A stretch of 63,340 bases of DNA, the filler included, from Perkinsus chesapeaki ATCC PRA-425 (taxonomy: Eukaryota; Protista; Perkinsozoa): assembly GCA_013115145.1 (NCBI GenBank). It is 15 parts of 15 records of this genome, joined end to end, with 100 filler letters (N's around TTAATTAATTAA, not from the genome) between each part and the next. Parts side by side here need not be neighbours in the genome. Positions count along the whole stretch, not along the records: positions 1 to 22,790 come from JAAPAO010000572.1; 14 more parts are not named here. One strand, written 5' to 3'. The notes beneath the pieces are model-generated. The model saw only the letters and a program-made list of their open reading frames with translations. It was not told where the DNA came from and did not search any database. The translations under genes were made by a program, and so were the position numbers. Positions 3,023 to 22,790 of the stretch are shown here, piece after piece; position 1 is the stretch's first letter; every line of letters starts with the position of its first letter.

Positions 3023-3205
3023 TTACACGAATCGTGAATTGGCAGCCCTTGTGACAACAAATGTGTCACAGAACTGCACGTGCTTACACGAATCGTGAAT
3101 TGGCAGCCCTTGTGAAAACAAATGTGTCACAGAACTGCACGTGCTTACACGAATCGTGAATTGGCAGCCCTTGTGACAACAAATGTGTCACAGAACTGCA
3201 CGTGC
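3023..3205. repeat. 61-bp tandem repeat, 3 copies
   Basis: TTACACGAATCGTGAATTGGCAGCCCTTGTGACAACAAATGTGTCACAGAACTGCACGTGC starts at 3023, 3084 and 3145; near-identical. Confidence 0.95.
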
Positions 3206-3855
3206 TCTACGCAGATTATAAGCAATACTACTTCTATTTATTGTGCACCGCCCGGTTTTTCTTATCCATTCTTCGAGATTCATCTGGGTCAGCAGGCAGC
3301 CTATGGCTGGAAGTCTCAGGCTGAGCTTTCGCTGAGTCATCGAAGCGTTGACTATCTCATGATATGAGATGTTCGTCATATATGAGACTCATATACGACG
3401 AACATAAAGAGGAAACATAGGAGCAGCTCAGGTTACCTGAGTCGGAAACAATGACACGATGGCGCCATTAGAGTACTTCTTTACGAGATCAGATCGAATG
3501 ATTACGTATACCGTTACCGGACTAGATTAGGAGATCATAGTAATACCATTATTCATGTTCAGAAAGAAGCTGTGTTTTCGGCCAACGGGGAGTTCACATA
3601 TACCGGGTATGCAGACTGTACTTACAGACTGTACCGTACAGTCCATACTATGAAATCGATTTTTGTAGAATACTGTAGTGGAGTGATCGATGTTGACCGT
3701 TCTGCGCGCGATCATGGCCGGATCGATACGTATTAGCTATTAGCACGCAGGCGCATATCTCCCCCTACAGTTGCTCTTATCGGAGCCGTATTCTCTGATA
3801 GCGCCCGTTAACGCACCATAATGTGTTGCGTTCATGAGAAACACTTGCACAAGTC

Positions 3856-3933
3856 ATTGCAATGAATGCAATCAACGGACTGATGGGGGGTGACGTGACA
3901 TCATGTAAGGATGGAGCGCGGGCGCCAGCGACA
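3856..3933 (-). repeat. Start of the 3' LTR, matching the 5' LTR remnant at 8692-8769
   Basis: 77 bp with three mismatches to 8692-8768. Begins TGTCGCTGGCGC on the minus strand directly after the PPT. Confidence 0.75.
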
Positions 3934-3946
3934 CTCCCTCTCACCC
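3934..3946 (-). promoter_or_regulatory. Polypurine tract of the Gypsy element
   Basis: Minus strand GGGTGAGAGGGAG immediately 5' of the TG that starts the LTR repeat. Confidence 0.65.
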
Positions 3947-4109
3947 GGAAAAGAAAGTGAATCAACGGCCGGTCATCAGCCTGATCCGATCAGGTGCTAC
4001 GTACAGTAGGTGGGATCGAGGCAGCCGGTAAATTCCGAACTGCGGTAGGAGAGATATACTTCAAGTGGTGTAGATGGATTCACGCTTAGTGGACCGACCA
4101 TTAGTTATA

Positions 4110-4537
4110 CAGTCCTCCAAATAAACTTAGAATATTTTGAAATAATATCGTTACTTCACAGCGGGAACGAGTTTAGTGCTCATTTTCGGATATGTTATGC
4201 ATATCCGTTTGGCTTTGATAAGCGTTTTCTTTTCGGGAGTAACGTTCTTAGTACGGGCCATTAAGGAACCAGAAGTGAAGAAATCACTGACAATCATGCT
4301 TTTCTGGTGACTATTCGCCCGCTTACGAAAATATTCTAAGTTAATTTGGCAATTCTGGCACGCGCAAAATTTTCGCTCGCCCATATATCAGTAACTAGGC
4401 ATGAAACGGTTACAATATTTTGACAAGTGGGTCTGAACTACCATATGCATAACATATCCGAAAATGAGCACTAAACTCGTTCCCGTTGTGAAGTAATGAT
4501 ATTATTTCAAAATATTCTAAGTTTATTTGGAGGACTG
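4110..4537. mobile_element. MITE, Tc1/mariner-like (95-bp TIRs, TA target duplication)
   Basis: TIRs 4110-4204 and 4443-4537 (CAGTCCTCCAAATAAACTTAG..., 2 mismatches), flanked by TA at 4108-4109 and 4538-4539. Interrupts the integrase C-terminus. Confidence 0.9.
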
Positions 4538-4539
4538 TA

Positions 4540-7500
4540 GCAATTTCGTAGACCCGAGGGGAAACCACACGGACAATTCGACAAGGATGAAAGGGACGAC
4601 AGTACTTCCGTTGCTTGCCGAAGCGACGAACCAACCAAAGTTCGTCAACATCGGGGAGACGTCCGGAACGGAGCCGTGGCAAAGAGGGCACAGGCGTAAC
4701 CGAAACATCGGAATCGGTGACAAGATCAGCAAGCTCTTCTGGAGGACGGAAAATAGGGTCAACTGTAGGGTAAGGCCAAGCAGGGAAGGTAAACACCAAG
4801 GAATGAGGAGTTCGACCAGTTCGGCGAGTAACATCGGTGTTGAACATAGAGGTAGCTTGAGCAATGATTGTCTTGAAACTGCCGAAAGTCAAAGGGGTAA
4901 TGCGAGCGTAAGCGCTCATTGAACTCGATGTGCACGCTCAACCTTGCCATTGGACCAAGAACTCTCGACAGGAGAAGGCACCGAAGAAGCTCGCATCCAA
5001 TTTAACGTAGAGAGAAACTCAGCTGACGTAAATTGGGAGCCTCCATCATGGTAGACCCTCCGCGGAACCGTATTGAAGCACTCGAATACGGACCGCAACG
5101 AGGCGAAAGTAACTTGAGCGGTAGGCATAGATTTGGTGACACGAGTAAGAAGATAACCACTAAAGTTATCGACAAGGGTAACCCCATACAGCTCGTATTC
5201 CTTGTAAGGTCCCACAATATCCATATGAACACCTACCCAGGGGGAAAAGCACGGGGAAGCTCGGGGCCCGAGCCTCGGGCCTATCAGATAAGCCAGCATC
5301 CACTGCTGCTGACATGGTAACCTTACTCGTAGTCTACGAGTCGTAGAGCAAGTAGGACAAGAGCGAACAAAGTCACGACAAAACGCTCGCAAGGCAGGGA
5401 ATACAACGAGCTCACGGAGGCGGTCGTGTAGCGCGGGACTACCCTCATGCTGATGGAGGGCACGAGCAAGGCCAGTCAACAGCTGCTTATCATGGACCAC
5501 TAGACGCCCCTGTGCATCCCGCTCAGGCTGAACAGAGAGACTGCCAAGAAATGCAGTCAAACAGGAGTGGGTAGGTAAGGAAGGACCAACATCACGAGGA
5601 ACGCAATATTTGGGGATCCGACTCAGCGGATCCGCAATATTAGAGGCACTGTCGACATGGACAACAGTGATATCCAAACGAAGAGCGGTAGCCGTTTCCC
5701 GGAGAACGCGGAGTCGGTTCTCAACAAGGGTAGCATTGAGGCCCCCAACAGCGCGCCGATGTTTCTGAAGGTTACGAGTGACCCAAGAAACCGCACTGGA
5801 ATTATCACAACAAATGGTCAAGGGCAAACGGGAGGCCCAAGAAAGGGCACGAATGTATTTCTCGACGAGCTGCAAGCCCGTAACGAGCGCGTCGAGTTCG
5901 GCCAGGTTTATATGGCGATGATCGCCCGGCTTGCGAAGGTGCGTGCCATCTTCAACAATAACAAATCCAATGCGCAAGACAGAACCATAGGCGTACTTGC
6001 TACTATCAGTAAAAAGGACCCATGGATCTGTAGGACAGTACTGGCAGGACCCATGGATCTGTAGGACAGTACTGGCATGTCCCATGCGCAGTATCGCCGG
6101 ATTCGAGGAGAGCAGCTTGCAACGCGTGGCACGCGGAAAGTTGGTGATCATCCAAAGGGGAATCCCACTGCGCGGAAGTTCCATCATGGCGGACGCATGC
6201 CAGTCGTTTCAGGGCCGAAAAAGCAGCTCTAGGCCAGCCGACAACAGGATGGTGCGCCACATATTTTCCTGCCCACTGATGAATGCCACGGCGAGTGGGG
6301 ACCTCCAAAGTGGGAACGACACCTCGACGATGCCACTGCCCACTCGAATCACACTGCAAGCCTAGCACGCGGCTAGTAAGGAGGGGCTCGGGCTCCTTAG
6401 TAGGGAAGTTCCCTAAGGGAACCCGTTGGAGGACAAGATGTCCCGAACGTACTGCAGTAACTCCCGAGGGAGTACTATATCGTCGAGGTACTTGTCAAGC
6501 TTGCTGCGAACCGATCACAGAATACGATCGAGACATACCTCGAGGCATTTCGGAGAAATGCTGAGCCCGAAGAGCAAGCGCAACATGCGAAACCTTTCTG
6601 GGCGCTTCAAACGGAGGCGTAGACCTAGATAAAAAGTTTGTGGCTCAAAAACGCGTATTTGGAGAAACGCCTTTTTCAAATCCAGGAGGAAAAAATCTTC
6701 CGGATTGCCGGGGAAAGCACGCCAGCGCCGGAGGTGCTCGGGGCAGGCGACTGGGCCGTCGCGCAATTCGTTGGGTAGCTACGTATACGATCATTCAACC
6801 ATTTCAGATCGATGCAGGGCCGGACCGGAGTGGTGACCTTATGTTCTTGGGGTACTAAGACAAGTGGGCTGGTTGCCTGGAGGTCAGGAAGGTCAGTGGG
6901 TACCAGCCAACCTGCGGTAATCCATTCCTCAACAACCGACTGCCATTGACCGGCAAGGTGAGGAGGAAATTTCGACTCGACATTGTAACCCGGTATCATG
7001 ATGTGGCGAGACGGAACATCGTTGAGCCATTTCTGGCGAAGAATGAAATCGCTTGTCTCGACATTGTCATGATTTGACTTTGTTCATGATGTTGTCGAGT
7101 CGACAACATCATGAACAAAGTCATACCCACGAAGGCTCCCGATTTCGAGGGAAAGAGTCACAAACTTGAACCCCAACGGCCTGGGGCGGTTGGGGAGGGG
7201 ACAACGACAAACACACAGGCCGGGCCTGCGGAAGAGCAGAAAAATCCCGATGCAAAGGAAACGAATAGAATGGATGGCCATCGGAAGTAAAGGAGAGGGT
7301 AACTCCCCCATGGGCCCGAATGAAATCGAGCCCAAGTAGGCCACTAAGCCGTAGACCCGACACCAGGGGAAATGAGGACGCGATTCCCCAACGGGGTAAG
7401 GTAACACCGAGTATGTCTAATTGACCTGCGCAAAGCTGTACTGGCAGTTTGCCGGAAATGCCTTGTAGGCTGGAAAAGTGGCCATCAGAACGATCGGCAG

Positions 7501-7711
7501 ACGCGGTCGCTGTTGACGCGTCGAAGGTGCTCAGGGAGCAGCCGGAGTCTAAGAGAAAAAGACGGGTATCAACATCCTCAATTACAACTAACGGGCTCAC
7601 CTTAGACGGACGACTCGCCTTGGAGCAAACATTGGCCTTATGGCCACCTTCCCCACATTTGAAGCAGACCACCGGGCTACTGCTATCGCCTTGGAGTACA
7701 GACTGCATCAA
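4540..7711 (-). pseudogene. Gypsy gag-knuckle/pol, frameshifted
   Basis: CFKCGEGGHKANVC knuckle; LLDSGCS protease; LDLKKAFLQI, FGL and YLDD (~6478-6489) RT; LFTDSSKYAYG...NIADPLSR RNase H; H..H..CPTC, DIVGP, DGGSQF and ERAH integrase. Split over several frames. Confidence 0.92.
6016..6077. repeat. 31-bp tandem duplication that frameshifts pol
   Basis: GGACCCATGGATCTGTAGGACAGTACTGGCA occurs twice. Removing one copy joins HGTCQYCPTDPWV to LFTDSSK in frame. Confidence 0.9.
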
Positions 7712-8672
7712 AGAGAGTAACTGATGAGCGGGTGAACTGCGCCCGTGACGACCTTTACCGCGGCCTTTCCCCTTTCCACCAGAAGAGAAACCACCAAGGC
7801 CGGGACCTTGGTGGCGAGTATACTATACTCGGTATAGGGGCCATGACGATGGGTAGTAGTCGATGAAGGGGTGGAATGAGCAACCATGCTCATCTCAGTA
7901 GGATCGTCATGCTCATCCTCAAACAAAGGACGGCAAATTTCGATACTCTCTACTAGAGTGATACGGCCATCAGGATGTTGAGACGGAACTTGTGAGAAGG
8001 CGTGCTTAACTTGGGCAGTCTTAGGAAGAGAGCTCCAGAGAATACTGGCGGCCACACAATCTCTGTCACGAGAGGTCAAGAACGGCCAATCTAGCTCAAG
8101 ACCACTCCGCGATACGGCTAGCAACATCGTCAATTTGAGTAGCACCAACCTCAAACTGTAATATGCGAAGTTTGCGGACAGCTTGGCTAGGTGTAAGCCC
8201 AAAAGCCTTGTCTAATGCAGACCAAATCTCCGTAACACGCCATCGCGGGGGTTTGCATGGTAGTCGACAATGCGAGCAGCATTATCAGTCAGAAATGCCC
8301 GGAGCTTATTCAGAGTTGTGGGCCACGTCCAACGTTTAACAGCGGCAAACGCGGTAAGTCTCCGCTTCCATTCAGTGAGGCTAATATCACGCTTGTTGCC
8401 GCTAAAGCGCTCAAGCTGTAGGGCCTTATCAGAGTTATCACGCTCGGCAATTGCATCTTCTGCGGCGCCTGCAGCCGCAAGGACACCACCTCCACCTGGA
8501 GGATCCTGCACACCGGCAGGGTCCGGGGGTCAGCTCCCACTGGGGGGAGTTCTGGAGGATCAACAACCTCATCAACCTCACCAGCCATAAAGGCATAAGC
8601 AACCTGGGGTCTGGCTACCATGTCGTCGGCATCGCCGGGGAACCCGAAATCCCCGATTGACGAACTTGACAT
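7708..8672 (-). pseudogene. Gypsy gag, frameshifted
   Basis: ATG at 8672 (MSSSSIGDF...). Gag-like LERFSGNKRDISLTEWKRRL...WTWPTTLNKLRAFLTDNA lies in an adjacent frame. Confidence 0.75.
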
Positions 8673-8769
8673 GAGGCGGAATATGGATAAGATTGCAATG
8701 AATGCAATGAACGGACTGATGGGGGGTGACGTGACATCATCTAAGGATGGAGCGCGCGCGCCAGCGACG

Positions 8770-10920
8770 ATGAATGAGATGGAACTGATAGCATCTCATG
8801 TAATGATTGACACTGATAATGCTACTGACCTAGAGATGATGATCGAGGCTCTCAAGCCTCAGTATAAGGGCCGAGAGTTTATGTAAGGTAGTTTATGCAG
8901 ATCGTGGGTGCTGTTCCAACGGTGAATACACTAAGTTGTTCGGTCGCATAAATGACAGTGCAGAGGTGGAATTAGATCTTTTTATTGGACACGTCGTATC
9001 GAGCAGTATGTTCGTGGATACCACCCTATCCGATCGTCGTTCTTCTCCGCACTACGCCAGTGTGTCTTCACTATCAGCCGTGGTGATGAAGAACTAGCAC
9101 TCAGTGCTATACGAAGTACTGGTAGGTGGGTGGAAACTCTTCACTGGAAAGCCTCAGCAGACGACAATACAGTCGTTACGTGCGCAAGGTGATTCCTGAA
9201 CCTATGTTAGTCCGAACTAGGCTGGAGGCCTTTCATAAGTACTACACTCGTTTGGATGCTCAGCTCAAGAATATGGGTGAAGGTTTTTTCTAGGAAACCC
9301 TAGCGTAGTTATCGTAGGTAGTTATCGTTGCGATAATCCGGCAAGAAAGGCCAGCTTCGGTCTCGATTATGAAGCCGACTGACACCAGTTCAAGCTCTTG
9401 AGCCACGTCGTTGAGGAAGGTGCTTTTGACATGGCTGATCCCAAGTTACTCGAAGAGAGTAATGTCAGCTCGTCTACAGGTCCTGTAGACCGATTCTCCG
9501 TTGGAACTCCTGTAGTACAGGAGTTCCAACGGATATCGAAGAATCGGATAGTGATACGGAGTCTATTTGGTTTGGAACTGAGGGTACAGATGAATTAGAT
9601 ATAGGTGAGACTCTCGGAGCAGAGGCTGAGGCGGATGTAGAGCCTACACAGCCATCGAGCTCAAGTCAGCAAGATGCATCTCGCATCTCGGATTTACGGC
9701 GCCAGTCAATCAAGTTCCGTGAGTCCATATTCAAGACCCAGAGTCCGTTATCGAACACACGCTCAGCAACGCTATTCCGTCAACTCGACGCCAAGTATCA
9801 ATTCTTAGATGCCGCAGATCGGGCTGTCCGCATTTGGGCAGAATTTGAGCTTCAGAGAAATGTGGATGCGACAGCCACATCTTCGAGAGCTGGTGCTTAG
9901 CCGGCCTCGGAAAGGATCGTGGGGCATACACCCCACTACTATCACGTGGGGCATAAAGGCTGTGCGTAGCCTCTCGAAAGAAAAAGACGCTGCCGATGCC
10001 TCAGGCGGGGTCCCACTATTCCGTCCGTAACTTCTCTGTTCGACGACGTAACTGGTGAATATAGTTTCGACCCTGAGCAGGGGAACCTCGACCGCGACTC
10101 GCGGTCCGCGAGGCTGAACATTCCGGAGTTCGGCATCCGAACAGGCATCCCCAAGTGTCGAAGTGCCGGGGTGTTCTAGCGGAGAATCTGTGTGGCGCTC
10201 GGTAGCTCTGAATGTTCAGAGTATGATGAAGAGGAAGGAGCTTCATATTACAAAGGGCGCCAAACGATGTGGAACGTGTGGCGTATCGTTCAACATACCC
10301 GACAGGCCACAAACACATCCGTGCATTCACGGTTACCGCATGTATCGCTACTGCCCACTGAGTCAGTGGCACTGACTACCCATAGCTCGACGAGTCGTCG
10401 ACGACGACTGGGTACTCGAGTTTGTCACTATACATCGAGCTTATCCTGCCGGGTAAGATTGAGGAATCTCAGAAAAGAAGGAGGGTTAAGGAGGGCTCAC
10501 TATGCTCTAGATGTGAGAAACCGTTATCCGCATGCCATTAACTGAACTTCAGTTACTGAAGGGGGTTACACAATATACTGGTGCCCTGATATGGACGGTC
10601 CTAGATGGTCATACGAAAAATGGAGGGACACGCCTGGCTTGGGGCCACGTGTTCTCGAAATGGTTCGCTTAAACGCCAGAAAGCATGATGCACGAGTGTT
10701 TGACGTCTTTTCTACTTATCCTGGATAAGTGGCAACAGTGGTAACACAACTCATGGATAAGTTATCCATGAGTTGTGTTACGCTAGTAACTGTTTCTATG
10801 TATCCTCTTCTCTTCCCTCTCTTTTTTCCCTCTTTTTCCCTCTTTTTCCCTTTCTTTTTCCCTTCTTCTTTCTTCCCTTTTTCTTTTCCCCCCTCTCTGG
10901 GTCAGGCTTTTCCCCCAGCC
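8770..10920 (+). mobile_element. Dada-like DDE transposon remnant, copy 1 (transposase pseudogene plus pyrimidine-rich 3' end)
   Basis: Manual translation across frameshifts: NEMELIASHVMIDTD...EALKPQYK, KVVYADRGCC (YADRGCC at 8894-8914), LDLF-(H)-WTRR (1-nt loss at 8984), GYHPIRSSFFSALRQCVF, YVRKVIPEP. After an internal deletion at ~9305 comes the same C-terminal region as ORF 19429-20913. These match my recollection of Dada/DUF6729-type transposase motifs. Confidence 0.7.
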
Positions 10921-10926
10921 AGCCAG

Positions 10927-10958
10927 GCGTGACAGGCAGGAATACTAACCGCTATACT
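10927..10958 (-). pseudogene. tRNA-Asp(GTC) fragment (D arm and anticodon arm)
   Basis: Reverse complement AGTATAGCGGTTAGTATTCCTGCCTGTCACGC matches tRNA-Asp at 22721-22790. Confidence 0.85.
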
Positions 10959-11272
10959 CTCGGAGTAAATGAAGATAAGTCGATTTGCAACAACGCGGGA
11001 AAATTTCCGTGCCAAGCCGTAGCATAAACACACATGATCACTTATTGTAAGATCGAAAATCCAACTCCACCAACTAGAGAGATCGTCCTAGTGCAGTAAA
11101 TGTACACCCCCGGTGCCCCCTGCTCAATGTTGGTCGAGTCTTCCTCGTGAAAAGCCTAAAAGGGCCTTGCGAGTGTGCCCGTGATTCACGCGTCATTGCA
11201 TCCTCTCAACATTGTTCAAGGGTAGGAGGGATCACTTACTATTTGACAGGTCTAAAGCTCATATTATCGTCA

Positions 11273-11362
11273 GGGGGACTAGGCTAGTCCGACTAGCTCA
11301 AATGGTAGAGCGTTCGCTTAGCAAGCGAGAGGCATCAGGATCGATGCCCGGATGATGCCCCA
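11273..11362 (+). pseudogene. tRNA-Ala(AGC) pseudogene
   Basis: Matches 21483-21555 but has a 14-nt insertion at the start of the A box and a rearranged 3' acceptor strand. Confidence 0.88.
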
Positions 11363-11617
11363 TTTTAAGCACTATAGATTTAAAATTGTCTACGGTACAG
11401 AGTGAACCGTGAACAACTTTTTTGGTTTTTTGGGGTCAGCAGGGGCAGCGTTAGCTCCTCTGTCCATTGGTGAAGAAATTCTGTGTATATCTGCACTAGT
11501 TATAGATCTACCTACCCCGGGAGATCGTGATGTGGGGGTCACTTAGCGCGCGTCAAAAAAATACGGAAAAATGCAGGGCGTGGGATTCGAACCTCCGAGG
11601 TTGCATCTGAATGACGT

Positions 11618-11865
11618 AGTACTAGTCCTAGTGTGGGTGACCTAGTACTAGTTACCAGTACTAGTCCTAGAGTGGGTGACCTAGTACTAGTTACTAGTAC
11701 CAGTCCTAGAGTGGGTGACCTAGTACCAGTTACTAGTACTAGTCCTAGAGTGGGTGACCTAGTACCAGTTACCAGTACTAGTCCTAGTGTGGGTGACCTA
11801 GTACTACTCCTAGTGTGGGTGACCCAGTACTAGTTACTAGTACTAGTCCTAGTGTGGGTGACCTA
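11618..11865. repeat. 39-bp minisatellite (~6 copies)
   Basis: GTGGGTGACCTAGTACTAGTTACCAGTACTAGTCCTAGA in tandem. The last unit is interrupted by the MITE and resumes at 12575. Confidence 0.95.
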
Positions 11866-12574
11866 CCGCTCGTTCAATAAACCTATTTTGGAACTAAGAA
11901 TCGATTTTGGAAACGATTTTGAAAAATCTTGTTCCAGGAACGGGTCCTGGAATCGATTCCGAACGTTTTCAGAAACGATTCTGAGTGCGTTCAAAAAGGC
12001 TCGCGTGCGATTCTGGAAGTGATTCTGAGCCGCCAGATTTCAAAATCGCTTTGACCGGTTCTAAACGTTTCGTTGCACGTGAAAGAGCGCACTCGCTACA
12101 GTAATTGAAATTCAATTATTGAATAAAGTCGAATAAAAGTTGTAGCGCAGGATCGAACTCTCAACCGTTGGGATTCGAAACTAAACTCCTAACCAATTAG
12201 ACTAGATTAACGAAAAAATTCTCTGAACCTGTGAGAATCCCCCAAATGCGTTAGGCAAATTGCCCAGAGTATCCTTAGACTAAGGATACTCTGGGCAATT
12301 GAAGCACTAAGGACCTTAGTGCTTCACGAGTTCGACTCCCGCACGTGACACTTTTATGTAGTTCACGAATTCGGGTTCTGGAAACATTTCTGGAATCGTT
12401 TTTGAAAATCGTGTCTATTGAACGCTGGTCAGAATCGTTGCCAGAATCGATTCCAAAAACGTGTTCCAATTCTCAAAATTGCGTTGATTGAACAGGTTCC
12501 CAAAATCGTTTTTCAAAATCGATTTTCAGAAACGATTCCAGAATCGCCTAAGCCATCTTTTATTGAACGAGCGG
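11866..12574. mobile_element. MITE with 16-bp TIRs and 3-bp TSD (PIF/Harbinger-like by TSD length)
   Basis: CCGCTCGTTCAATAAA (11866-11881) and TTTATTGAACGAGCGG (12559-12574). CTA duplicated at 11863-11865 and 12575-12577. Many subterminal GAATCGATT/AAACGATT motifs. Confidence 0.85.
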
Positions 12575-12863
12575 CTAGTACCAGTACATTGAGTACTAGG
12601 TCTTGCGCTTCGCTCCGCTATTAAAAGCGCTCGCCCGAACACATTTTTTACGTGTCTAAAGCTGGTGTTAATCTACAAAGTAATACTTGAAGTAGTACTG
12701 CGGTATACTCTGCAGTTATATGTAGTACTCGTACTGGATATTACTTATTAAGGGGGCGACCTGGTACTAGTATTATTATGGAAAAGGAAGAGAGGAAGTC
12801 TCAGTGATGATTGTCTTGCCACGCAGGAGGGTTCTGGAATGGAGGAGGAAACTATGCAGGTAA

Positions 12864-13115
12864 GAGTCCTTGGGAATTAGGAGGAGGGGTGACCTAGTAC
12901 TAGGATTATCAGTGCTTGGGAATTCTAATTATTATTGAGGGGGTGACCTAGTACTAGTATTATTAGTCCTTGGGAATTCTAATTATTATTGAGGGGGTGA
13001 CCTAGTACTAGTGTTATTAGTCCTTGGGAATTGAATTCTTTACTGGGGGGTGACCTAGTACTAGTATTATCAGGCCTTGGGAATTCTAATTATTATTGAG
13101 GGGGTGACCTAGTAC
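12864..13115. repeat. ~54-bp minisatellite (~4.5 copies)
   Basis: GAGGGGGTGACCTAGTACTAGTATTATTAGTCCTTGGGAATTCTAATTATTATT units. Confidence 0.9.
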
Positions 13116-13203
13116 TTAGTAGTGCTAGTAATTACTGAATTACTACAGTACCAATACTCGTTCCAGGGGTGCTTGGTAGTTTAATGGTACTGTAGTACTG
13201 GTG

Positions 13204-13205
13204 GT

Positions 13206-13273
<68 letters not shown>

Positions 13274-13303
13274 CAGCAGCAGTAGTAGTAGTTGTAGTAG
13301 TAC
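13204..13303. repeat. (GTA/GCA)n microsatellite
   Basis: Direct reading of the sequence. Confidence 0.97.
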
Positions 13304-13709
13304 TGCAAGTACCATTACTCGTACTAGTACGGTTTAGAATAGTTTATAATTTCATTTATTTCGTCTTGAATTGTGGATACCACAATTTCGCAATTGACTA
13401 GTGTCGTCGGTAATTTAACAGATATAATGGTAGAGTTGAAGCGAAGTAAGTTGTTAAAGGGGAGTATGTAAAGGTAAACTCTTGTGCAGGTATCGATAGT
13501 TGTAAAGGAACGATTGAAATGCATGGAGTTCCAACCCGAAAACGCAAGAGAGAAAGTGTCAGTGATGATTGTTTTACCCGTAAGGCAACAGTCAGCCCCC
13601 AGCGCGTTGAGTTCGAAGGAAGTCCGCCCCCGGGTAAGACGGGAGATAACTTATTACTAGTAAAATGTTATGGATTGTAGTTAAATTCGGGTTTTCGTAG
13701 AACTAGTAC

Positions 13710-14060
13710 GGGTAGTGATCGTAGAACTTCCAGTACTAGTAACCGGTAGTGATAGTAGTACTTCCAGTACTAGTAACCGGTAGTGATAGTAGAACTTCCA
13801 GTACTAGTAACCGGTAGTGATAGTAGTACTTCCAGTACTAGCAACCGGTAGTGATAGTAGTACTTCCAGTACTAGTAACCGGTAGTGATAGTAGTACTTC
13901 CAGTACTAGTAACCGGTATTGATAGTAGTACTTCCAGTACTAGTAACCGGTAGTGATAGTAGTACTTCTAGTACTAGTAACCGGTAGTGATAGTAGTACT
14001 TCCAGTACTAGTAACCGGTAGTGATAGTACTTCCAGTACTAGTAACCGGTAGTGATAGTA
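13710..14060. repeat. 34-bp minisatellite (~10 copies)
   Basis: CCAGTACTAGTAACCGGTAGTGATAGTAGTACTT; AACCGG recurs at 13741, 13775 and 13809. Confidence 0.95.
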
Positions 14061-14212
14061 ACATGGCAGGCTGCCATTGGCAGCATAGTAATAAGTAACA
14101 TAGCTTGTAGTACTACCAGTGCTACAAGGTATATATTGGAGCCGAGCAGCTTTCCATAATACGAGAGCGTGTCTCACAGCCCATATGCATTTATTTCCTG
14201 TATATTATGTAG

Positions 14213-16928
14213 TTGGAAATCAATTTTTACATGCCAGTTAAAGAAGGCCATACCCGTGTTGTATGCGACATATGCGGAAAGGAGTATTGGAAGTATGCTC
14301 GATACAAGCACGCGTGCTACAGGAATCCTAATAGGGTTCAATGCCCTATATGTGGAGAATTCTTCGTAGCGCTGCACCGACACATCAATCGGGAGGTATG
14401 TAAAAGAAATGCACAAAAGAAGAAAGCCCAAGAAGGTGGTCCATATTTATAGTATTTATCGGGTTCCGATGCGCTCCCTTTCAGCTCGCAAATCGGAACC
14501 CATTACCCCTTTTGGCGAACATATCACCCCTCTTGAGGAACTGATTCAAACTTCTGAGGAACCAAATGAGCCTTCTAAGGAACTTATTACGCCTTTTGGT
14601 AAAGCGGCTCGTGATGCTGTTGCATTGCAGGTGGACGTTTCGTCTACTACAGCCTCTGCTCCTGTCATTACTACCCCACCTGGGGAATCTATTACCCCAC
14701 CTGGGGAAGGTACTACCCCCCCTGAGGAATCTATTACTTCTCCTGAGGAATCTATTACTCCATCTGGGGAATCTATTACCCCACCTGGGGAAGGTACTAC
14801 CCGCCCTGAGGAATCTATTACTCCACCTGGGGAATCTATTACTCCACCTGGGGAATCTATTACCCCACCTGGGGAAGGTACTACCCCCCCTGAGGAATCT
14901 ATTACTCCACCTGGGGATATTACCCCACCTGGGGAATCTATTACCCCTCTTGAGGATCCTATTGAGTCTCTCGAAGAACCTATTGAAACAACTACGGTTG
15001 CTATTCCTACGTCTTCTAGTAGTGCGCCACGATTGGATCGACTCGTATCAAGTATCCCTCGTGCTACTCCAGTCGGTGGGGCCACCATTACGTCATTCGG
15101 TGCTCCTAGCGGTGGACCTGATGTGGATTCGATCGTCATACCAATTTATCCGCGTACATTGCTAAGTGTACATGGGACTTTCGATGGCTGGCGAATTGGT
15201 GGTGGGGCGGGGCCAATTAAAGGTGTTGATGGTACGCTGGTGTGCATCGCGACGGAACCATATGTTCTGATGGCGAAAGCTAATCAGTTCGACAATCTTC
15301 GCTTTTGCGATGGCCTTTACAATTATGGAATGACCGCCGTGTGGAATGATAACTTTGGAACTTCGGTTGTGCTTGGAACTATATCTGTTTCTACCAGAGT
15401 ACTCGTCCAGGTGTTGGATGACATATATCCGCCAGATGAGTATCTTCTGTTATGCCGTTATGGACAGAAGCTGAAAATTATGCGGGAGCTTATCAATTAC
15501 TATGATTCCTTAGTGCGGGTTGACCATCGAACACTATCAAATGAATCTAGTCTGGTCAAAACAATTTACGATATAGGCCGCAACTTCGATGACACTGCGA
15601 TTTGCTTACTGACCACCACCAACCCCAATGTTAAGCCGTGGAATTTGCTATCAGTTCTTGGAGGAGCGAACTCCGGTTCATTAAGATGGTCCGAAAAGGT
15701 GTATATTCCTGGTGCAGTATCGTGCGAGACTAATGTTGTTTTATATCCCCGATTGGTGCATTTTCTTAAGGGTGTTATGGGTACCAAGAAATATGTCCCT
15801 TTAAAATACCAAGCTTTCAGGAAGCTTGTAAATGATACCAAAAAACTTTTGCGGAAGATGCGTGAAGCTCCCGAACGGTGGTTATATGGTTATCGCCTTG
15901 AATATAGCCTTAGCATTGAAGCTAAAGAAGGTGTGAAATTAAGTACCGCTTACAATGCTGTTGGGCCCCGGTTATCACTGCATTATCATCCTGATGTTGC
16001 CGTATGCCGTGTTGATCCCAAAGAGTACATGAGCTACATTCAACTGATGTTGGATGTAGCGGATCAGTCCGGCGTTTATTCTGGACCGAACGCCGAGCCA
16101 TTGAGTAAGAGGGCAAAAGCATTCGCAGCTTTTATGATTAATACTCTGGGGAACACTTCCCCTCATATCCAATCTCTTGAACGTGAAGGTAAATTCGTCT
16201 ACTATGAGTACCTAAAGTCTTTCGCGATGACTAGGGGGAAGCTGCATAACCCGGATCCAGACCATCTTCAACCAGATAGAGATGAATGTGTGGATATGAG
16301 AAACAACGTCAAGTGGCGAAAGCCACTAACTAAAGCGGATACCCCTTTGTCAGTGGCCTACTCGATTAAAAGGTTTGGTCCTGTTGGTAAGACCAAGTGT
16401 TCTAAAAGCCATCCCAGCTTCTTCTCGGCTATGAGAGAAATTTGGGATGCCTTTTCCGAACATTGGAGAGATAGAGTTGTATTAACGAATGGGAGGAACG
16501 ATACCCCAGAATCTGACCCCTTCAAAGATATTCCTGGTGGTTATCCGGAAGCGTATGGCACAATCTCACGGCATTTTCAACACCCATCCAGGAAACGGGC
16601 GCGTTCAAAACACGCATTCTGCGGAAGGGTCGAGAGAGGGTGCAAATTTAAGGAGACCACAGCTGCAAAGGAGGGGAAATCCACTGCGCCCGCTTCTGCT
16701 GCCATTACTGCTGCTGTCAATATTGCTGCTGCTGATGCGAGGAGGGATGATGAGGTAGAGGATGAGGTAGAGGATAAGGGAGAGGATGAGGTAGAGGAAG
16801 ATTTTGGGATATGGATATGCTGGAATGGATACTCGGCCAGTGAGCTGCGACGATTGATCAAGATCTTTTTCCTACTTTTTTCCTACTTTTTCAGGATGCA
16901 GAGCTTGCGATACCCCCTCTTCAGTTAA
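14213..16928 (+). CDS. Uncharacterised zinc-finger / Pro-Thr-Glu repeat / unknown-domain protein (spliced; 5' exons further upstream)
   Basis: Exon 14213-14435 follows an AG acceptor and encodes CDIC...HAC and CPIC...H...C fingers. A 49-nt GT...CTTTCAG intron (14436-14484) joins it in frame to the uninterrupted 839-codon ORF. Acidic tail. Confidence 0.75.
14685..14950 (+). repeat. 21-bp coding tandem repeat (ESITPPG-type heptads)
   Basis: GAATCTATTACYCCACCTGGG variants within the long ORF. Confidence 0.95.
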
Positions 16929-17319
16929 GGCTGCAGTGGAGAATGAATAAGGCATTGGATGCTCGCGCGTCAGCCACGTACAGCCATGGATGTGCTAGTG
17001 CCTCAAAAAGGTGTTAAGTACTATATTTTAGTGTTCCAGGTGATCGCGAAGTTGATGAATGAGTGTGTCACACACTGTGTGTGAGTGTATTAATATGCGT
17101 CTGTGTTGTATGCGTATCATCTTATTTATTAGTTTCTCAGATTATACAGATACATGGAATTGTGTTTCAAAATGTCCAAATGTACTACCATTAGTTGCAC
17201 ATACTTGCACAATTTGGTGCGCAACTAATCTGAAGCATCTAGTTCCGTAATAAGCTGCTGTGGGGCTACAACTGGCTTAAGATAGAGTTTAAAATGCGCA
17301 AACAGTTGACCCTCAACTT

Positions 17320-17690
17320 TACTAGGTCACCCATTCACTGCAGTACAAGTTCCCTACATTACCAGTATCAAGCCAGGACTATCCTGGGCGGGTACTAGGT
17401 CACCCATTCGCTGTAGTACAAGTTCCCTACTTTTTAACCAGTATCAAGCCAGAACTATCCTGGGCGGGTACTAGGTCACCCATTCACTGTAGTACAAGTT
17501 CCCCACATTACATTACCAGTATCAAGCCAGAAATATCCTGGGCGGGTAGTACGTCACCCATTCACTGTAGTACAAGTTCCCTACTTTCTAACCAGTATCA
17601 ATCCAGAACTATCCTGGGCGGGTACTAGGTCACCCATTGGACTGCAGTACAAGTTCCCTACTTAACCAGTATCAAGCCAGAACTATCCCC
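17320..17690. repeat. 73-78-bp minisatellite (5 copies)
   Basis: Units start TACTAGGTCACCC at 17320, 17393, 17469, 17547 (variant) and 17623. Confidence 0.95.
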
Positions 17691-17714
17691 TAAGAATCTC
17701 CTAAGAATCCGTAA

Positions 17715-17887
17715 GGTGCCATTGGTTAGGATTGAGGTCTGTCGTTCTGAAGGTCAAGGTTCGATTCTCGGTGAGAAATTGAGAAAATGCCAACGGAAGA
17801 AAGACTGTCGTCCCTCGGTAGAATATGCAAGCTGGTTCGGATGGACATTCTACATAGTTTCTGCCCGACAATGCTCCAAATAATAAA
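17715..17887. other. tRNA-derived (A/B-box-like) segment with conserved hairpin, copy 1
   Basis: Near-identical to 22548-22720. GGTTCGATTC B-box-like motif. Does not fold as a cloverleaf. Confidence 0.55.
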
Positions 17888-17904
17888 TTCCACGGCCGAG
17901 AATT
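17888..17904 (-). pseudogene. tRNA-Asp 3' fragment
   Basis: TTCCACGGCCGAGAATT, identical to 22721-22737 and in the same flanking context. Confidence 0.8.
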
Positions 17905-19415
17905 AAACGTAAATGATTTTGGGCTTGATTACGCTTTTGCCCTTCATGGACAAGAGTTGCTTGAACATGTGACACAGGAAAATGCCGAAGCTATGGTTGT
18001 CATGAGATCTACCAAGGAACAGCCGTCGTCATCTAGCAGCTCAACAACAGTCCCAGCTACAGCAAATTTCGATAATATAGAGTCAGAACCTCTGGATGGC
18101 GATGAACTCGATATTGAGTCCTGGGGGCTTGGTGAAGAAGATGATCTCGTAGATGTAGAGGCTCTTGCAGAAATTATGTGCAGTACTGGGGATGCGGAGA
18201 CGGTGGGTGGACCGAAAGAGGATTTACGCCGTCAGGCGGTGAAATTCCGGGGGTCGATTTTCAAAGTTCAAGTTGCCCATTGGCTAACGCTAGATCGGCC
18301 TCACTTTTCCGGGAGCTCAACAAGAAGTACAACTGCTTGGGCATTACTGATCGTTCAGTTCGCATTTGGGCAGACTTTGAACTTCAACGTAACATCGAAT
18401 CACAGAATTACGAAGCTTCTCCAGGAGAAGCTCTCCTGGGGTTCTGCCTGCTCGTGAAAGGATAGCTAAAACAAGTATCACTTGGTGTATGAAAGCCTTG
18501 CGTCAGCTCGAAACATCAGAGGATGGGAAAAATGTGAGTGGAGGTGGCCCCGTCGTCGAGCGCGCCGACTTCGCGGTGGAAGGTAAAGAATTCTAATACA
18601 AGCCTGCAATTGGTTCAGTTCGGGTGAATGATGCGGACAATACTGATGGCGAAGATGCGGAAGCTTTGATGATTGATACTGCGCCTGCGACTCGTGAAAC
18701 ACTCTGGAGGGATACAGCGTTAGAGATCCAACGAAGGATGCGGCTTAAACTGCTCCATGTTCCACGGGGCGCAAAAACTTGCTCCAACTGTGCAGTCCCC
18801 TTCCAGGTCACCGCCAGCGTTGGCGTTGGCGTCTTGGCAACAACACAGAGTCACCCTTGCATTCAGGGGCACAGAACGTATAGATACTGCCCTTTGACTA
18901 CGCATCCAGAAGTTAACGGCTTTATGAGCCTCGAGGATTACAAGAGACTCATACTCCCACAGAATCAACTCAAAACTCAAGCCCGCAAGCGAGCCAAGGA
19001 AGAAGCACTATGCAACAGATGTGGAGAGCCGCTAGCAGACACACATCGTCCACTGAGTTCGAAGTTCGAACAACTATACAGTTTATTGGTGTCCTTCACT
19101 CGACGGTAGCCGTTGGACATTTCAGAAATGGCGAGATACACCGGGGCTTGGACCGAGAAGGTTGACTATGGTCGAACGTAATGCAGCCGGCGGTACCAAG
19201 CGGATGAGAACAAATTGAATCTTATATCAAGCATGATATTAATGAAGATAAACACTGACTTGCGTAGAGTCTATCCGAGGGTATAATAGTCGTTCTTTTT
19301 CATAGTAAATTCTTCTTCCTCCTTCCCTCTCTTTTTTCCTTGTTTTTCTCTTTTCTTCTCTTTTTTTCCTTCCTTTCTTTTTCTTCTCTCTTTCCCTCCT
19401 TTCTCCTTTCCAGCC
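17905..19415 (+). mobile_element. Dada-like transposon remnant, copy 2 (diverged family, frameshifted)
   Basis: DFGLDYA, DLRRQAVKFRGSIFK, CSNC...HPCIQGHRTYRYCP and CNRC motifs homologous to ORF 19429-20913. Ends in a pyrimidine tract plus CCAGCC like copies 1 and 3. Confidence 0.65.
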
Positions 19416-21103
19416 CGCGTGCGGGACAGTGCAGAAGTCCTACAAGTCATCCAGAATGAGCGCCAACCTTGTAAACGCAGTTGTCCATGAGCTAGCGGCT
19501 CACTGGAACCGGCGTGCACTTCAAAAGATTGGCAAGGACGCATGTCCTATCACAGATCTCCGCGATTGGACAGATTTTCAAGGCACCATGGGCAGTATGT
19601 TGCCGAACCAACAGCAAGGAGGTCTATCCGCCGGTAGTTATCGTAGCGATAATCCAGCAAGCAACGCCAGCTTCGGTCTCGATTATGCAGCTGACTTACA
19701 CCAGTTCAAGCTCTTGAGCCACGTCGTTGAGGAAGGTGCATTTGACATGGCTGATCCCAAGTTGCTCAAAGGGGGTAATGTAAGCTCGTCTACAGGAGCT
19801 CCAACGGATGTCGGAGAAACGGATAGTGATACGGAGTCTATCTGGTTCGAAACTCAGGATATAGATGAATTAGATATAGGTGAGACTCTCGGAGCAGTGG
19901 CTAAGGCGCATGTGGAGCCTTCACAGCCATCGAGCTCAAGTCAGCAAAATGCATCTCGCATCTCGGATTTACGGCGCCAGTCAATCAAGTTCCGTGAGTC
20001 CATATTCAAGACCCAAAGTCCGTTATCGAACACACGCTCAGCAACACTATTTCGTCAACTCGATGCGAAGTATCAATCCTTAGATGCCGCAGATCAGGCT
20101 GTCCGCATCTGGGCAGAATTTGAGCTTCAGAGAAATGTTGATGTGATGGCCACATCTTCGAGAGCTGGTGCCTTACCGGCCTCGGAAAGGATCGTGAAGA
20201 CTAGTATCACGTGGTGCATAAAGGCTGTGCGTAGCCTTTCGAAAGAAAAAGACGCTGCCGATGTCTCAGGCGGGGGTCCTACCATTCCGGCCGTAACTTC
20301 TCTGTTCGACGACGTAGCTGGTGAATATAGCTTCAACCCTGAGCCGGGGAATCTCGACCGCGAGGCTGGCCATTCCGAAGAGGCATCCCCAAGTGTCGAA
20401 GTGCCGGTTTGTTCTAGCGGAGAATCTGTCTGGCGCTCGGTTGCTCTGGATGTTCAGAGTATGATAAAGAAAAAGGAGCTACATATTCCAAAGGGCGTCA
20501 AACGATGTGGGACGTGTGGCGTACCTTTCAACATACCCGACAGGCCACAAACACACCCGTACATTCAAGGTTACCGCATGTATCGCTACTGCCCACTGAC
20601 TACCCATAGCTCAACGACTGGGTACTTGAGTTTGTCACAGTACATCGAGCTTATACTGCCGGGTAAGATTGAGGAATCCCAGAAAAGGAAGAGGGTTAAG
20701 GAGGGCTCACTTTGCTCAAGATGTGAGAAACCGTTATCCGCTGGGCACATGCCATTAACTGAAGGGGGATATACAGTATACTGGTGCCCTGATATGGACG
20801 GCTCTAGATGGTCATACGAAAAATGGAGGGACACGCCTGGCTTGGGGCCACGCGTTCTCGAAATGGTTCGCTTGAATGCCGGTGGAAGGACGAAAAAACG
20901 CCAGAAAGCATGATGTACGGGTGTTTGACGTCTTTTTTACATATCCATGCGCTGTGTTACGCTAGTGACTGTTTCTATGTACCCTCTTCTCTTCCCTCTC
21001 TTTTTTCCCTCTTTTTCCCTCCTTTTTTCCCTTCTCCTTCTTTCTTCCCTTTCTCTTCCCTTTTTCTTTTCCCCCCTCCCTGGGTCAGGCTTTTCCCCCA
21101 GCC
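19416..21103 (+). mobile_element. Dada-like transposon remnant, copy 3 (5'-truncated)
   Basis: Contains the 494-codon ORF, then a pyrimidine tract and CCCCCAGCC abutting the tRNA-Asp 5' half. Confidence 0.7.
19429..20913 (+). CDS. C-terminal half of a Dada-type transposase with two CCHC-type zinc motifs
   Basis: Open 494-codon frame. HELAAHWNRR near the start; CGTC...H...YRYCP and CSRC...GH...YWCP; basic tail. In copy 1 the homologous region is linked to DDE-core motifs. No catalytic core in this copy. Confidence 0.65.
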   Translation: MQKSYKSSRMSANLVNAVVHELAAHWNRRALQKIGKDACPITDLRDWTDFQGTMGSMLPNQQQGGLSAGSYRSDNPASNASFGLDYAADLHQFKLLSHVVEEGAFDMADPKLLKGGNVSSSTGAPTDVGETDSDTESIWFETQDIDELDIGETLGAVAKAHVEPSQPSSSSQQNASRISDLRRQSIKFRESIFKTQSPLSNTRSATLFRQLDAKYQSLDAADQAVRIWAEFELQRNVDVMATSSRAGALPASERIVKTSITWCIKAVRSLSKEKDAADVSGGGPTIPAVTSLFDDVAGEYSFNPEPGNLDREAGHSEEASPSVEVPVCSSGESVWRSVALDVQSMIKKKELHIPKGVKRCGTCGVPFNIPDRPQTHPYIQGYRMYRYCPLTTHSSTTGYLSLSQYIELILPGKIEESQKRKRVKEGSLCSRCEKPLSAGHMPLTEGGYTVYWCPDMDGSRWSYEKWRDTPGLGPRVLEMVRLNAGGRTKKRQKA

Positions 21104-21148
21104 CTCCTGCGTGACAGGCAGGAATACTAACCTCTATACTACCGCGGA
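21104..21148 (-). pseudogene. tRNA-Asp(GTC) 5' 45 nt
   Basis: TCCGCGGTAGTATAGAGGTTAGTATTCCTGCCTGTCACGCAGGAG, identical to the intact gene where they overlap. Confidence 0.9.
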
Positions 21149-21482
21149 ACTAATATTTTATTTTTCGTCTCGGAGTGAATGAAGATAAGTCGATTTGCAA
21201 CAACGCGGGAAAATTTCCGTGCCAAGCCGTAGCATAAACACACATGATTACTTATTGTAAGAGCGAAAATCCAACTCCACCAACTAGGGAGATCGTCCTA
21301 GTGCAGAGAATGCACACCCCCGGTGCCCCCTGGTCAATGTTGGTCGAGTCTTCCTCGTGAAAAGCCTGAACGGGCCTTGCGAGTGTGCCCGTGATTCACG
21401 CGTCATTGCACCCTCTCAACATTGTTCAAGGGTAGGAGGGATCACTTGCTATCTGACAGGTCTAAAGCTCATATTATCGTCA

Positions 21483-21555
21483 GGGGGACTAGCTCAAATG
21501 GTAGAGCGCTCGCTTAGCAAGCGAGAGGCACCGGGATCGATGCCCGGGTTCTCCA
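21483..21555 (+). tRNA. tRNA-Ala (anticodon AGC)
   Basis: 73 nt; acceptor GGGGGAC/GTTCTCC with G3:U70; anticodon arm CTCGC-TTAGCAA-GCGAG; A and B boxes; followed by TTTT. Confidence 0.97.
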
Positions 21556-22525
21556 TTTTGAGCATTATAAATTCAAAATTGTCTACGGTTGCGTGAACAC
21601 AATAGCATCACATTCTTAAACTTAGCTGCGCACTCTCCTCCATTTCGGTAGCTCTGGGTGCGCATACCCGTAACCTCTATCCTGCCGGATTTTATTCTCC
21701 TAACGCGCACTTGCTTATCGCTATGCCGTCTCTTTTGCGCACTGTACTACACTGTAGTGTAGACAGTGACTGTAGCGCCTCAGCCATCACATCACACCAA
21801 CTGTATCATCACGCCTCCCGTAATTTCGAATTCAACCGACCTTGGACCAGCTTAACTCTCTCGTACACACAACCCTCCGTAATCGACCACGGTGCGATAC
21901 TATCAATTCAACTCAATCGGGAAGAAAACGGTACGACAAGCAATAAGTGTAGTGTGACATGCCAGCTTGGAAAAGCCTCGTAAACTGGAAGTGAATCACC
22001 GCATCAGCATGCCTTCATTCAGCGATATTCACCTTCGCACAACCTTTGATGGCGGTTCCTATCGTCGTAGGAATGGTGACACGGTGACAGCAATTTATAC
22101 TAAAATAAATTATATATTAATTATTCTTTACAATACTTGATTGAATCACCAGTTGCCATCCTGTCCATGCCCCCCAGCTTTTCTGCATTCAAATTTACTG
22201 TGAGGGTGGAATCATGACGGTGATTGAACGTCTGAAAACGGATGGGCTGTCACCACTTTGCTCGAGAAGTAGTCGTGGGAAATCTGGTATGGCAATGAGT
22301 TTTTCGGTGCGCGCGGGAATTTAATGCTACTGAACGTGCTTCAACATCGACTATTATCTGCCACCGTAGCCTCTCAGGATCAAGGCAAATACATGATCCT
22401 CTTGCTTTCGGAAGCCGCTAGGCAGTCCCAGCAACGGCCTTCATGAGAAGAGAGTAAAATTTGTGACTCGCCGGCAGTAGAAGTTGTGGATTTCAGAACT
22501 GCTTTTTAGTACCTCACAAACTGAG

Positions 22526-22720
22526 GGAGTACTGGACCAGTACTACTGGTGCCATTGGTTAGGATTGAGGTCTGTTGTTCTGAAGGTCAAGGTTCGATTC
22601 TCGGTGAGAGATTGAGGAAATGCGAACGGAAGAAAGACTGTCGTCCCTCGGTAGGATAGGCAAGCTGGTTCGGATGGCCATCCTACATAGTTTCTGCCCG
22701 ACAATGCTCCAAATAAGGAA
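22526..22720. other. tRNA-derived (A/B-box-like) segment with conserved hairpin, copy 2
   Basis: TGGTGCCATTGG A-box-like and GGTTCGATTC B-box-like motifs; paralog of 17715-17887. Confidence 0.55.
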
Positions 22721-22790
22721 TTCCACGGCCGAGAATTGAACTCGGGTCTCCTGCGTGACAGGCAGGAATACTAACCTCTATACTACCGCG
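22721..22790 (-). tRNA. tRNA-Asp (anticodon GTC); first 2 nt lost in the gap
   Basis: Anticodon arm CCTGC-CTGTCAC-GCAGG, T arm CCGAG-TTCAATT-CTCGG, acceptor (TC)CGCGG/CCGTGGA. Confidence 0.95.

Follow-up and report, generated by a model that had tools for sequence, protein, structure and literature searches.

FOL47_008712, listed as a hypothetical protein of the alveolate clam parasite Perkinsus chesapeaki, contains a core domain whose predicted fold and near-invariant residues resemble those of the Rep_trans rolling-circle initiators. With the arguments on the two sides close to balance, we read this core as a eukaryotic Rep_trans-like tyrosine nuclease belonging to a family of mobile elements, and the 6.3-kb block of DNA around its gene as a mosaic. 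The window, i.e., the whole stretch of DNA analyzed, is 63,340 nt long, and the gene lies in its first part, the 22,790-b contig C3029 of a 41.7-Mb assembly of 3,544 contigs. The original prediction regarded the entire block, with its satellites and an unassigned zinc-finger gene, as a candidate new mobile element. Mobility suits the gene family, which is patchily distributed and has ~8 mostly broken loci in this genome; it is not supported for the block, which is single-copy and mosaic and has replaced a spacer.

The core of FOL47_008712 has no match in Pfam, and searches of Pfam, PHROGs and PDB sequences with the core and its homologs returned nothing beyond an OTU domain; the ESM Atlas was blank. 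To this extent the core is unassignable, as had been stated, but an AlphaFold2 (AF2) model of ~380 aa is modestly nearest to Rep_trans initiators and TBP in Foldseek searches. The model, which covers core residues 1-385 and was built from an alignment of 105 sequences, has a pLDDT of 89 and a pTM of 0.86. Against the PDB, Foldseek ranked the Rep_trans initiators 4cwe and 4cwc at the top (E 0.03-0.04, probability 0.47) with nothing related after them, and re-alignment of this list gave scores of 6.1 for 4cij, 4.5-5.1 for TBPs and 5.0 for 4cwe. Rep_trans proteins came first with two independent aligners. The predicted model has the crescent-shaped, TBP-like antiparallel sheet of two 5-strand modules by which Rep_trans proteins are recognized. 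In a library of viral structures, matches were weak and fell on Inoviridae proteins, TBPs of giant viruses and a replication protein of a Vibrio phage, a pattern that has also been reported for the archaeal Rep-Arvir family (PMC13107129). No HUH-endonuclease structure appeared in the fold-search lists of this confident model, and no Rep or helicase family matched in Pfam. Neither a Pfam transposase domain nor an RNase-H-like fold match was detected, and the likeness to DDE transposons with subterminal motifs that had been suggested for the block does not extend to its protein. A first AF2 model from 7 sequences (pLDDT 62) gave no fold match, with the HUH relaxase TrwC at rank 8 (probability 0.04), and was superseded.

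In Rep_trans enzymes, which have a TBP-like sheet, the metal ligands D46, D142 and E214 are located on separate strands, the nucleophile Y191 shares strand 10 with R189 and K193 and precedes a helix, and R212-x-E214 is on strand 11 (PMC4797284). Among ~100 family sequences of ~20% identity, the near-invariant residues are D9 (99%), D11 (98%), K125 (99%), D159 (97%), G194 (99%), Y217 (99%), H222 (99%), K225 (96%), and G265, R267 and E269 (98% each), all of which are kept in FOL47_008712. In the AF2 model, D9, D11, K125, D159, G194, Y217, H222, K225, R267 and E269 are placed on strands or on the helix after Y217. The D-x-D motif (D9/D11) is on strand 1 and D159-I-G on a middle strand; K215-x-Y217-P-R219 is at the end of strand 207-218, which runs into helix 219-228 carrying H222 and K225, and G-x-R267-x-E269 is on strand 265-276, the next after the Y217 strand. 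That a D, D, D, Y, H, K, R, E set is so nearly invariant points to a catalytic role. From residue order and strand position, Y217 would be equivalent to Y191 of Rep_trans, and the conserved residues are predicted to form a Rep_trans-like active site.

We compared the family with the Rep_trans set of PF02486, namely pT181 RepC, pC221 RepD, RepSTK1 and the MOBT relaxases. The two have in common the (predicted) crescent or TBP-like beta-sheet. Judged by residue order and strand position, they would also share invariant Asp on the first strand and on a middle strand, an invariant Tyr at a strand end that is followed by a helix, an R-x-E strand coming next, and basic residues at the second position before and after the Tyr (in the family K215, 83%, V here, and R219, 60%, or R/K219, 71%). 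A helical region also follows the family core where RepD has its DNA-binding domain. In contrast to Rep_trans, the family lacks detectable sequence homology, resides in eukaryotic hosts, carries C2HC fingers and, in relatives, OTU, and has additional helices that separate the Tyr strand from the R-x-E strand; neither an origin hairpin nor a circular replicon was identified.

Several observations weigh against a Rep_trans-like nuclease. The position of K215, the equivalent of R189, is occupied by V in FOL47_008712 and likewise in the Perkinsus paralogs. PF02486 matched neither the protein nor 56 homologs, nor did it match in a six-frame search of the genome. Comparison with a 7-sequence RepC-type profile by hhalign gave a probability of 0.5%, and a PDB profile search was blank. 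The profile was narrow since the word search with RepC gave close staphylococcal relatives only; hhalign against a single RepC was not significant either. The sole local hhalign alignment, although not significant (probability 0.5%), speaks for the nuclease in pairing YRLEYSL with WRVEIEL, and thereby R267/E269 with R212/E214. The clustering of the proposed catalytic residues is predicted from strand positions alone. FOL47_008712 showed no origin-like hairpin, no recognizable element ends and no second copy, and the strong hairpins in the block are all inside an unrelated miniature inverted-repeat transposable element (MITE).

If the core is a Rep_trans-like nuclease, D9/D11, D159 and E269 would serve as metal ligands, Y217, at a strand end with a helix after it and basic residues around it, would be the nucleophile, and GYRLEY would be the R-x-E strand. 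The protein would then act as a metal-dependent tyrosine nicking-joining enzyme that cleaves a single strand of DNA site-specifically, with the fingers directing the choice of site, and remains covalently attached via Y217, and the element or episome would be copied in a rolling-circle-type manner. Such a route would leave neither terminal inverted repeats (TIRs) nor target-site duplications (TSDs). In the window, the gene alone would have survived, as a single intact copy.

Rep_trans enzymes are apparently restricted to bacteria, and an archaeal family is related to them structurally only; Rep-Arvir, found in archaeal viruses and plasmids, gives weak Foldseek matches to TBPs and Inoviridae Reps (PMC13107129, 2026). 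The present family resembles Rep-Arvir in its relation to Rep_trans at the level of structure and probably also in where its conserved Tyr and three acidic residues are placed. Unlike the present family, which has no Pfam match and is known from sequence and a model, Rep-Arvir is archaeal, combines DUF7845 with a wHTH and has been validated by mutagenesis. With Helitrons, Helentrons and Replitrons the family would share a tyrosine nuclease and the expected lack of TIR and TSD, and Helentrons also have OTU proteases. In contrast, their nuclease is an HUH Rep of RRM-like fold, accompanied by a helicase in Helitrons, whereas the family has a different fold and neither an HUH motif nor a helicase. 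To our knowledge, the known eukaryotic rolling-circle elements, i.e., Helitrons, Replitrons and CRESS viruses, all use this unrelated HUH fold, and no eukaryotic element of the Rep_trans type was encountered in full-text literature searches. More tentatively than the assignment of the core itself, we suggest that the family may be a third, eukaryotic branch of TBP-fold rolling-circle endonucleases beside Rep_trans and Rep-Arvir. It would represent an unrecognized superfamily of mobile elements or episomes that is linked to zinc fingers and OTU proteases and spans alveolates, basidiomycetes and marine protists, and the fingers of FOL47_008712 may recognize the 13-mer arrays described below. If true, this would be a new class of eukaryotic mobile DNA and would extend the TBP-fold tyrosine nuclease to all three domains of life. 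It would also give a function to proteins now called 'hypothetical' or 'OTU domain-containing' in Perkinsus, Tilletia, Trichosporon and Tremella.

A word search of the protein collection found FOL47_008712 itself and no close relative, and no ortholog was found in protein collections. An exhaustive profile search returned 107 proteins at E<1e-3. These include several proteins of Tilletia controversa, T. indica and T. laevis, as well as Tremella mesenterica proteins and Tara Oceans unigenes; the relatives in Trichosporon asahii are 923-994 aa long, are named 'OTU domain-containing' and are encoded on many 4-6 kb contigs. Some relatives are on Mb-scale ENA contigs that are presumably eukaryotic. 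P. olseni gave one 100-aa partial family match, for which orthology is not established. OTU is present in 10-11 of the 56 family members examined and also in the C109 paralog described next.

In the P. chesapeaki genome, a profile search located ~8 loci, with core paralogs of 25-29% identity. Only three are intact: FOL47_008712 and the paralogs on contigs C2516 and C109. The copies on C28 (two), C3340, C3361, C760 and C1643 are frameshifted, stopped or fragmentary. The C2516 paralog has one finger and the core in a single 511-aa open reading frame (ORF) and lies by itself in a repeat-free contig of 122 kb. On short contigs, the C109/C28/C3340 subfamily is present in repeated copies that match as DNA (72-96% identity); in this subfamily the core is followed by an OTU protease (PF02338, E 1e-12). 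The patchy distribution, the multiple decaying copies and the lack of a close relative of FOL47_008712 make the family selfish-element-like, and the view that FOL47_008712 is not a conserved cellular gene is supported. Satellite flanks were rejected as a family trait, as the C2516 locus has none and those of C109 and C28 have unrelated single arrays; the predicted co-occurrence of 13-mer arrays with homologs fails, the paralog loci being devoid of satellite pairs that share a motif. Targeting of tRNA genes by the family was also rejected, only one of five scanned paralog regions (window excluded) being near a tRNA. On C109, a long array of 15-bp period is located at 4830-5564, downstream of the OTU-bearing paralog, and similar arrays occur on many contigs.

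The atypical zinc fingers, heptad spacer and GYRLEY motif reported for the protein were all read in translation (Table 1). Two C2HC-like fingers are encoded within ORF 14213-14452, with weak Pfam finger matches, and a 49-nt GT-AG intron (14436-14484) connects exon 1 to the 839-aa ORF at 14409-16928. The public gene model additionally excises an in-frame 42-nt GT-AG 'intron' at 14293-14334, which encodes YARYKHACYRNPNR, the His/Cys half of finger 1. This annotated intron is probably a prediction artefact, and the two-finger reading requires that the segment be retained. Searches used the continuous ORF, not the joined multi-exon model. The first part of the tail is conserved with the pre-OTU linker of the C109 and C28 paralogs according to alignment and ORFs, but no OTU domain follows it here.

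Table 1. Coordinates of the block, its gene and flanking features, counted along the window
Feature	Position	Strand	Basis or remark
Degenerate tRNA-Ala-like pseudogene, left edge of duplicated unit	11294..11351	+	Rfam tRNA 25.1 bits (gathering score 29); uncalled by ARAGORN
Block, 6.3-kb filler in place of the 958-bp tRNA-Ala/tRNA-Asp spacer (21590-22547) of the adjacent unit	11397..17714		self-BLAST breakpoints
39-bp minisatellite, 13-mer forward, right end truncated by MITE	11618..11865	+	TRF, 13-mer sites, sequence read
709-bp MITE within a 13-mer copy of the 39-bp array	11866..12574		perfect 16-bp TIR CCGCTCGTTCAATAAA and 3-bp TSD CTA, read directly
54-bp minisatellite, 13-mer forward	12886..13121	+	TRF, 13-mer sites
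34-bp minisatellite, 10.7 copies, without 13-mer, immediately upstream of gene	13702..14060	+	TRF
Exon 1, two C2HC-type zinc fingers (CDICG...HAC; CPICG...H-x5-C)	14231..14435	+	ORF translation, annotated model
21-bp x13.3 coding repeat, ITPPGES heptad linker of 13 heptads	14672..14947	+	TRF, translation
Core domain, ~380 aa, predicted TBP-like saddle with Rep_trans-like active-site pattern	15096..16250	+	AF2, fold matches, conservation
Core residues D9, D11, K125, D159, Y217	15120, 15126, 15468, 15570, 15744	+	coordinates checked
Core residues H222, K225, R267, E269	15759, 15768, 15894, 15900	+	coordinates checked
GYRLEY motif	15888-15905	+	contains R267-x-E269
Low-confidence C-terminal tail	16251..16950	+	pLDDT <50
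76-bp minisatellite, 13-mer inverted	17320..17688	-	TRF, 13-mer sites
Conserved right flank of duplicated unit, ending in ~21-nt tRNA-Asp stub	17715..17908		94% identical to 22548-22741

The block is located in the first copy of a duplicated unit. By self-BLAST, 9317-11396 aligns with 19633-21589 at 82% and 17715-17908 with 22548-22741 at 94%, and the distance between these anchors is 6.3 kb in unit 1 versus 958 bp in unit 2. The original prediction placed the block in a tRNA-Ala to tRNA-Asp interval that is under 1 kb in the next unit; the short spacer is indeed there, but the block's own flanking tRNAs are a 25-bit pseudogene and a ~21-nt stub. By ARAGORN and Rfam, the only true tRNAs are those of unit 2, tRNA-Ala at 21483-21555, to which the tRNA-Ala-like sequence at 11294-11351 is homologous, and tRNA-Asp at 22721-22790. 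On C1360, C344 and C2591 the short spacer likewise adjoins tRNA-Ala or tRNA-Asp (77-87% identity), and its presence in unit 2 and on three other contigs indicates that it is the common state. The block and the short spacer show no similarity above shuffled controls, with no spacer remnants inside the block, and the block is therefore a replacement rather than a clean insertion. An inverted-repeat search of 11397-17714 and direct reading of the boundary sequences revealed neither TIR nor TSD at the block ends, as the original prediction had noted. As DNA, the complete block is found once in the genome, and only two of its pieces, the 709-bp element and the 54-bp array with its left flank, recur elsewhere. 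The other genomic copies and empty sites from which ends were to be defined are thus reduced to internal pieces and to an 'empty' spacer that was replaced, not interrupted. The best explanation is a repeat-rich mosaic that took the place of the usual ~1-kb tRNA-Ala/tRNA-Asp spacer in one copy, now decaying, of the duplicated unit; the block as a mobile unit is not supported.

The 13-mer GGGTGACCTAGTA bears out the observation that drew attention to the block. Fifteen sites with at most one mismatch are present versus 0.01 expected by chance: 11 on the + strand left of the gene (11635-11829 in the 39-bp array and 12887-13114 in the 54-bp array) and 4 on the - strand to its right (17320-17635 in the 76-bp array). 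TRF confirmed that the three arrays have otherwise different repeat units, and detected additional arrays, a 34-bp repeat, (GTA)37 and the coding repeat (Table 1). In the 41.7-Mb genome, the 13-mer occurs only at this locus and at 2 sites on contig C407. There, the 54-bp array together with ~115 bp of the sequence to its left (G000:C407:2308-2906) is 85% identical to window 12771-13130, and the gene is absent. Nothing else on this 3.7-kb contig is related to the window. An ACTAGT-type palindromic motif accompanying the 13-mer was considered as a genome-wide satellite and rejected (34 sites versus 21 in the control, 7 of the 34 inside the block). We regard the 13-mer satellites on the two sides of the gene as arrays of common descent that are specific to this locus, and a role as binding sites is possible.

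One alternative is that the whole 6.3-kb block is a DNA transposon whose own transposase binds inward-facing subterminal 13-mer arrays with its fingers. Known DDE transposons with subterminal arrays likewise have short motifs in opposite orientation on both sides of a gene for a DNA-binding protein. Three different units share the 13-mer, which is in forward orientation before the gene and in inverted orientation after it and is nearly restricted to this locus; the ACTAGT-related motif is no genome-wide satellite, and the block is located where other copies of the unit carry the short spacer. Unlike such transposons, however, the block is single-copy, lacks TIR, TSD and any DDE-type domain by Pfam and fold search, and took the place of the spacer instead of splitting it. 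Its satellites are minisatellites of different units. Those on the left are separated from the gene by 1.3-2.8 kb and by other arrays, a MITE interrupts one of them, the 54-bp array is found on C407 without the gene, and no paralog locus has flanking arrays with a common motif. We consider this explanation improbable, the least likely of the alternatives.

FOL47_008712 could instead be a lineage-specific or domesticated host gene for a DNA-binding protein or nuclease that is no longer mobile, its satellites and position in the tRNA array being incidental. The intact 839-aa ORF, the plausible short GT-AG introns, the retention of all near-invariant residues, the single copy without definable ends and the second intact finger-and-core paralog, alone in its long repeat-free contig, would all suit such a gene. 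That the word search finds no other protein and P. olseni only a 100-aa partial fragment argues against it, as do the multi-copy, decaying sister subfamily and the patchy eukaryotic distribution; we regard it as unlikely, although the least so of the alternatives. Slightly less likely still is a TBP-like saddle that is not a Rep_trans-type nuclease and would either bind DNA without catalysis or be an enzyme of some unrelated, novel kind. The modest fold scores, with TBPs nearly equal to Reps, and the missing sequence-level signal are what would be expected of it. Against it stand the near-invariant D, D, D, Y, H, K, R, E set, which speaks for catalysis, the kind, order and strand placement of these residues, which mirror the Rep_trans motifs, and the agreement of two independent aligners on Rep_trans proteins as top matches. 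The Rep_trans-like nuclease within a mosaic block is our preferred reading over these three.

The element inside the block at 11866-12574 is short and non-coding, has TIRs and a TSD, and occurs in multiple dispersed copies, which identifies it as a MITE. Copies are found on C2944 (90%, with TCA as TSD) and C864 (81%), in addition to many fragments. Within it are a perfect palindrome of 21 bp (12258-12300) and, at ~12146-12210 and ~12320-12345, stretches that resemble tRNA. Just left of the 39-bp array, a tRNA 3'-half-like fragment with the T-loop motif GGTTCGAATCC is present on the - strand (~11575-11612); it is unlike the tRNA-Asp and tRNA-Ala of the unit.

Elsewhere in the duplicated units, partial tRNA-Asp pieces are located at 10927-10958 and 21104-21146, and unit 2 has an intact 494-aa ORF without a Pfam family (19429-20913), which corresponds to several short ORFs in unit 1, where it is broken. 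Just upstream in unit 1 are the remains of a long terminal repeat (LTR) retroelement on the - strand (~3856-8768), with a 423-aa ORF (4916-6187) encoding an integrase core and an H2C2 zinc domain. A second ORF, of 196 aa (7121-7711), matches a CCHC knuckle weakly and below threshold (E 0.0014). The 77-bp direct repeats at 3856-3932 and 8692-8768 (96% identity) may be LTR remnants. Upstream of the retroelement are a 61-bp x3 tandem repeat (3023-3206, 98% identity) and a 660-bp direct repeat (1004-1667 and 2304-2962, 79% identity).

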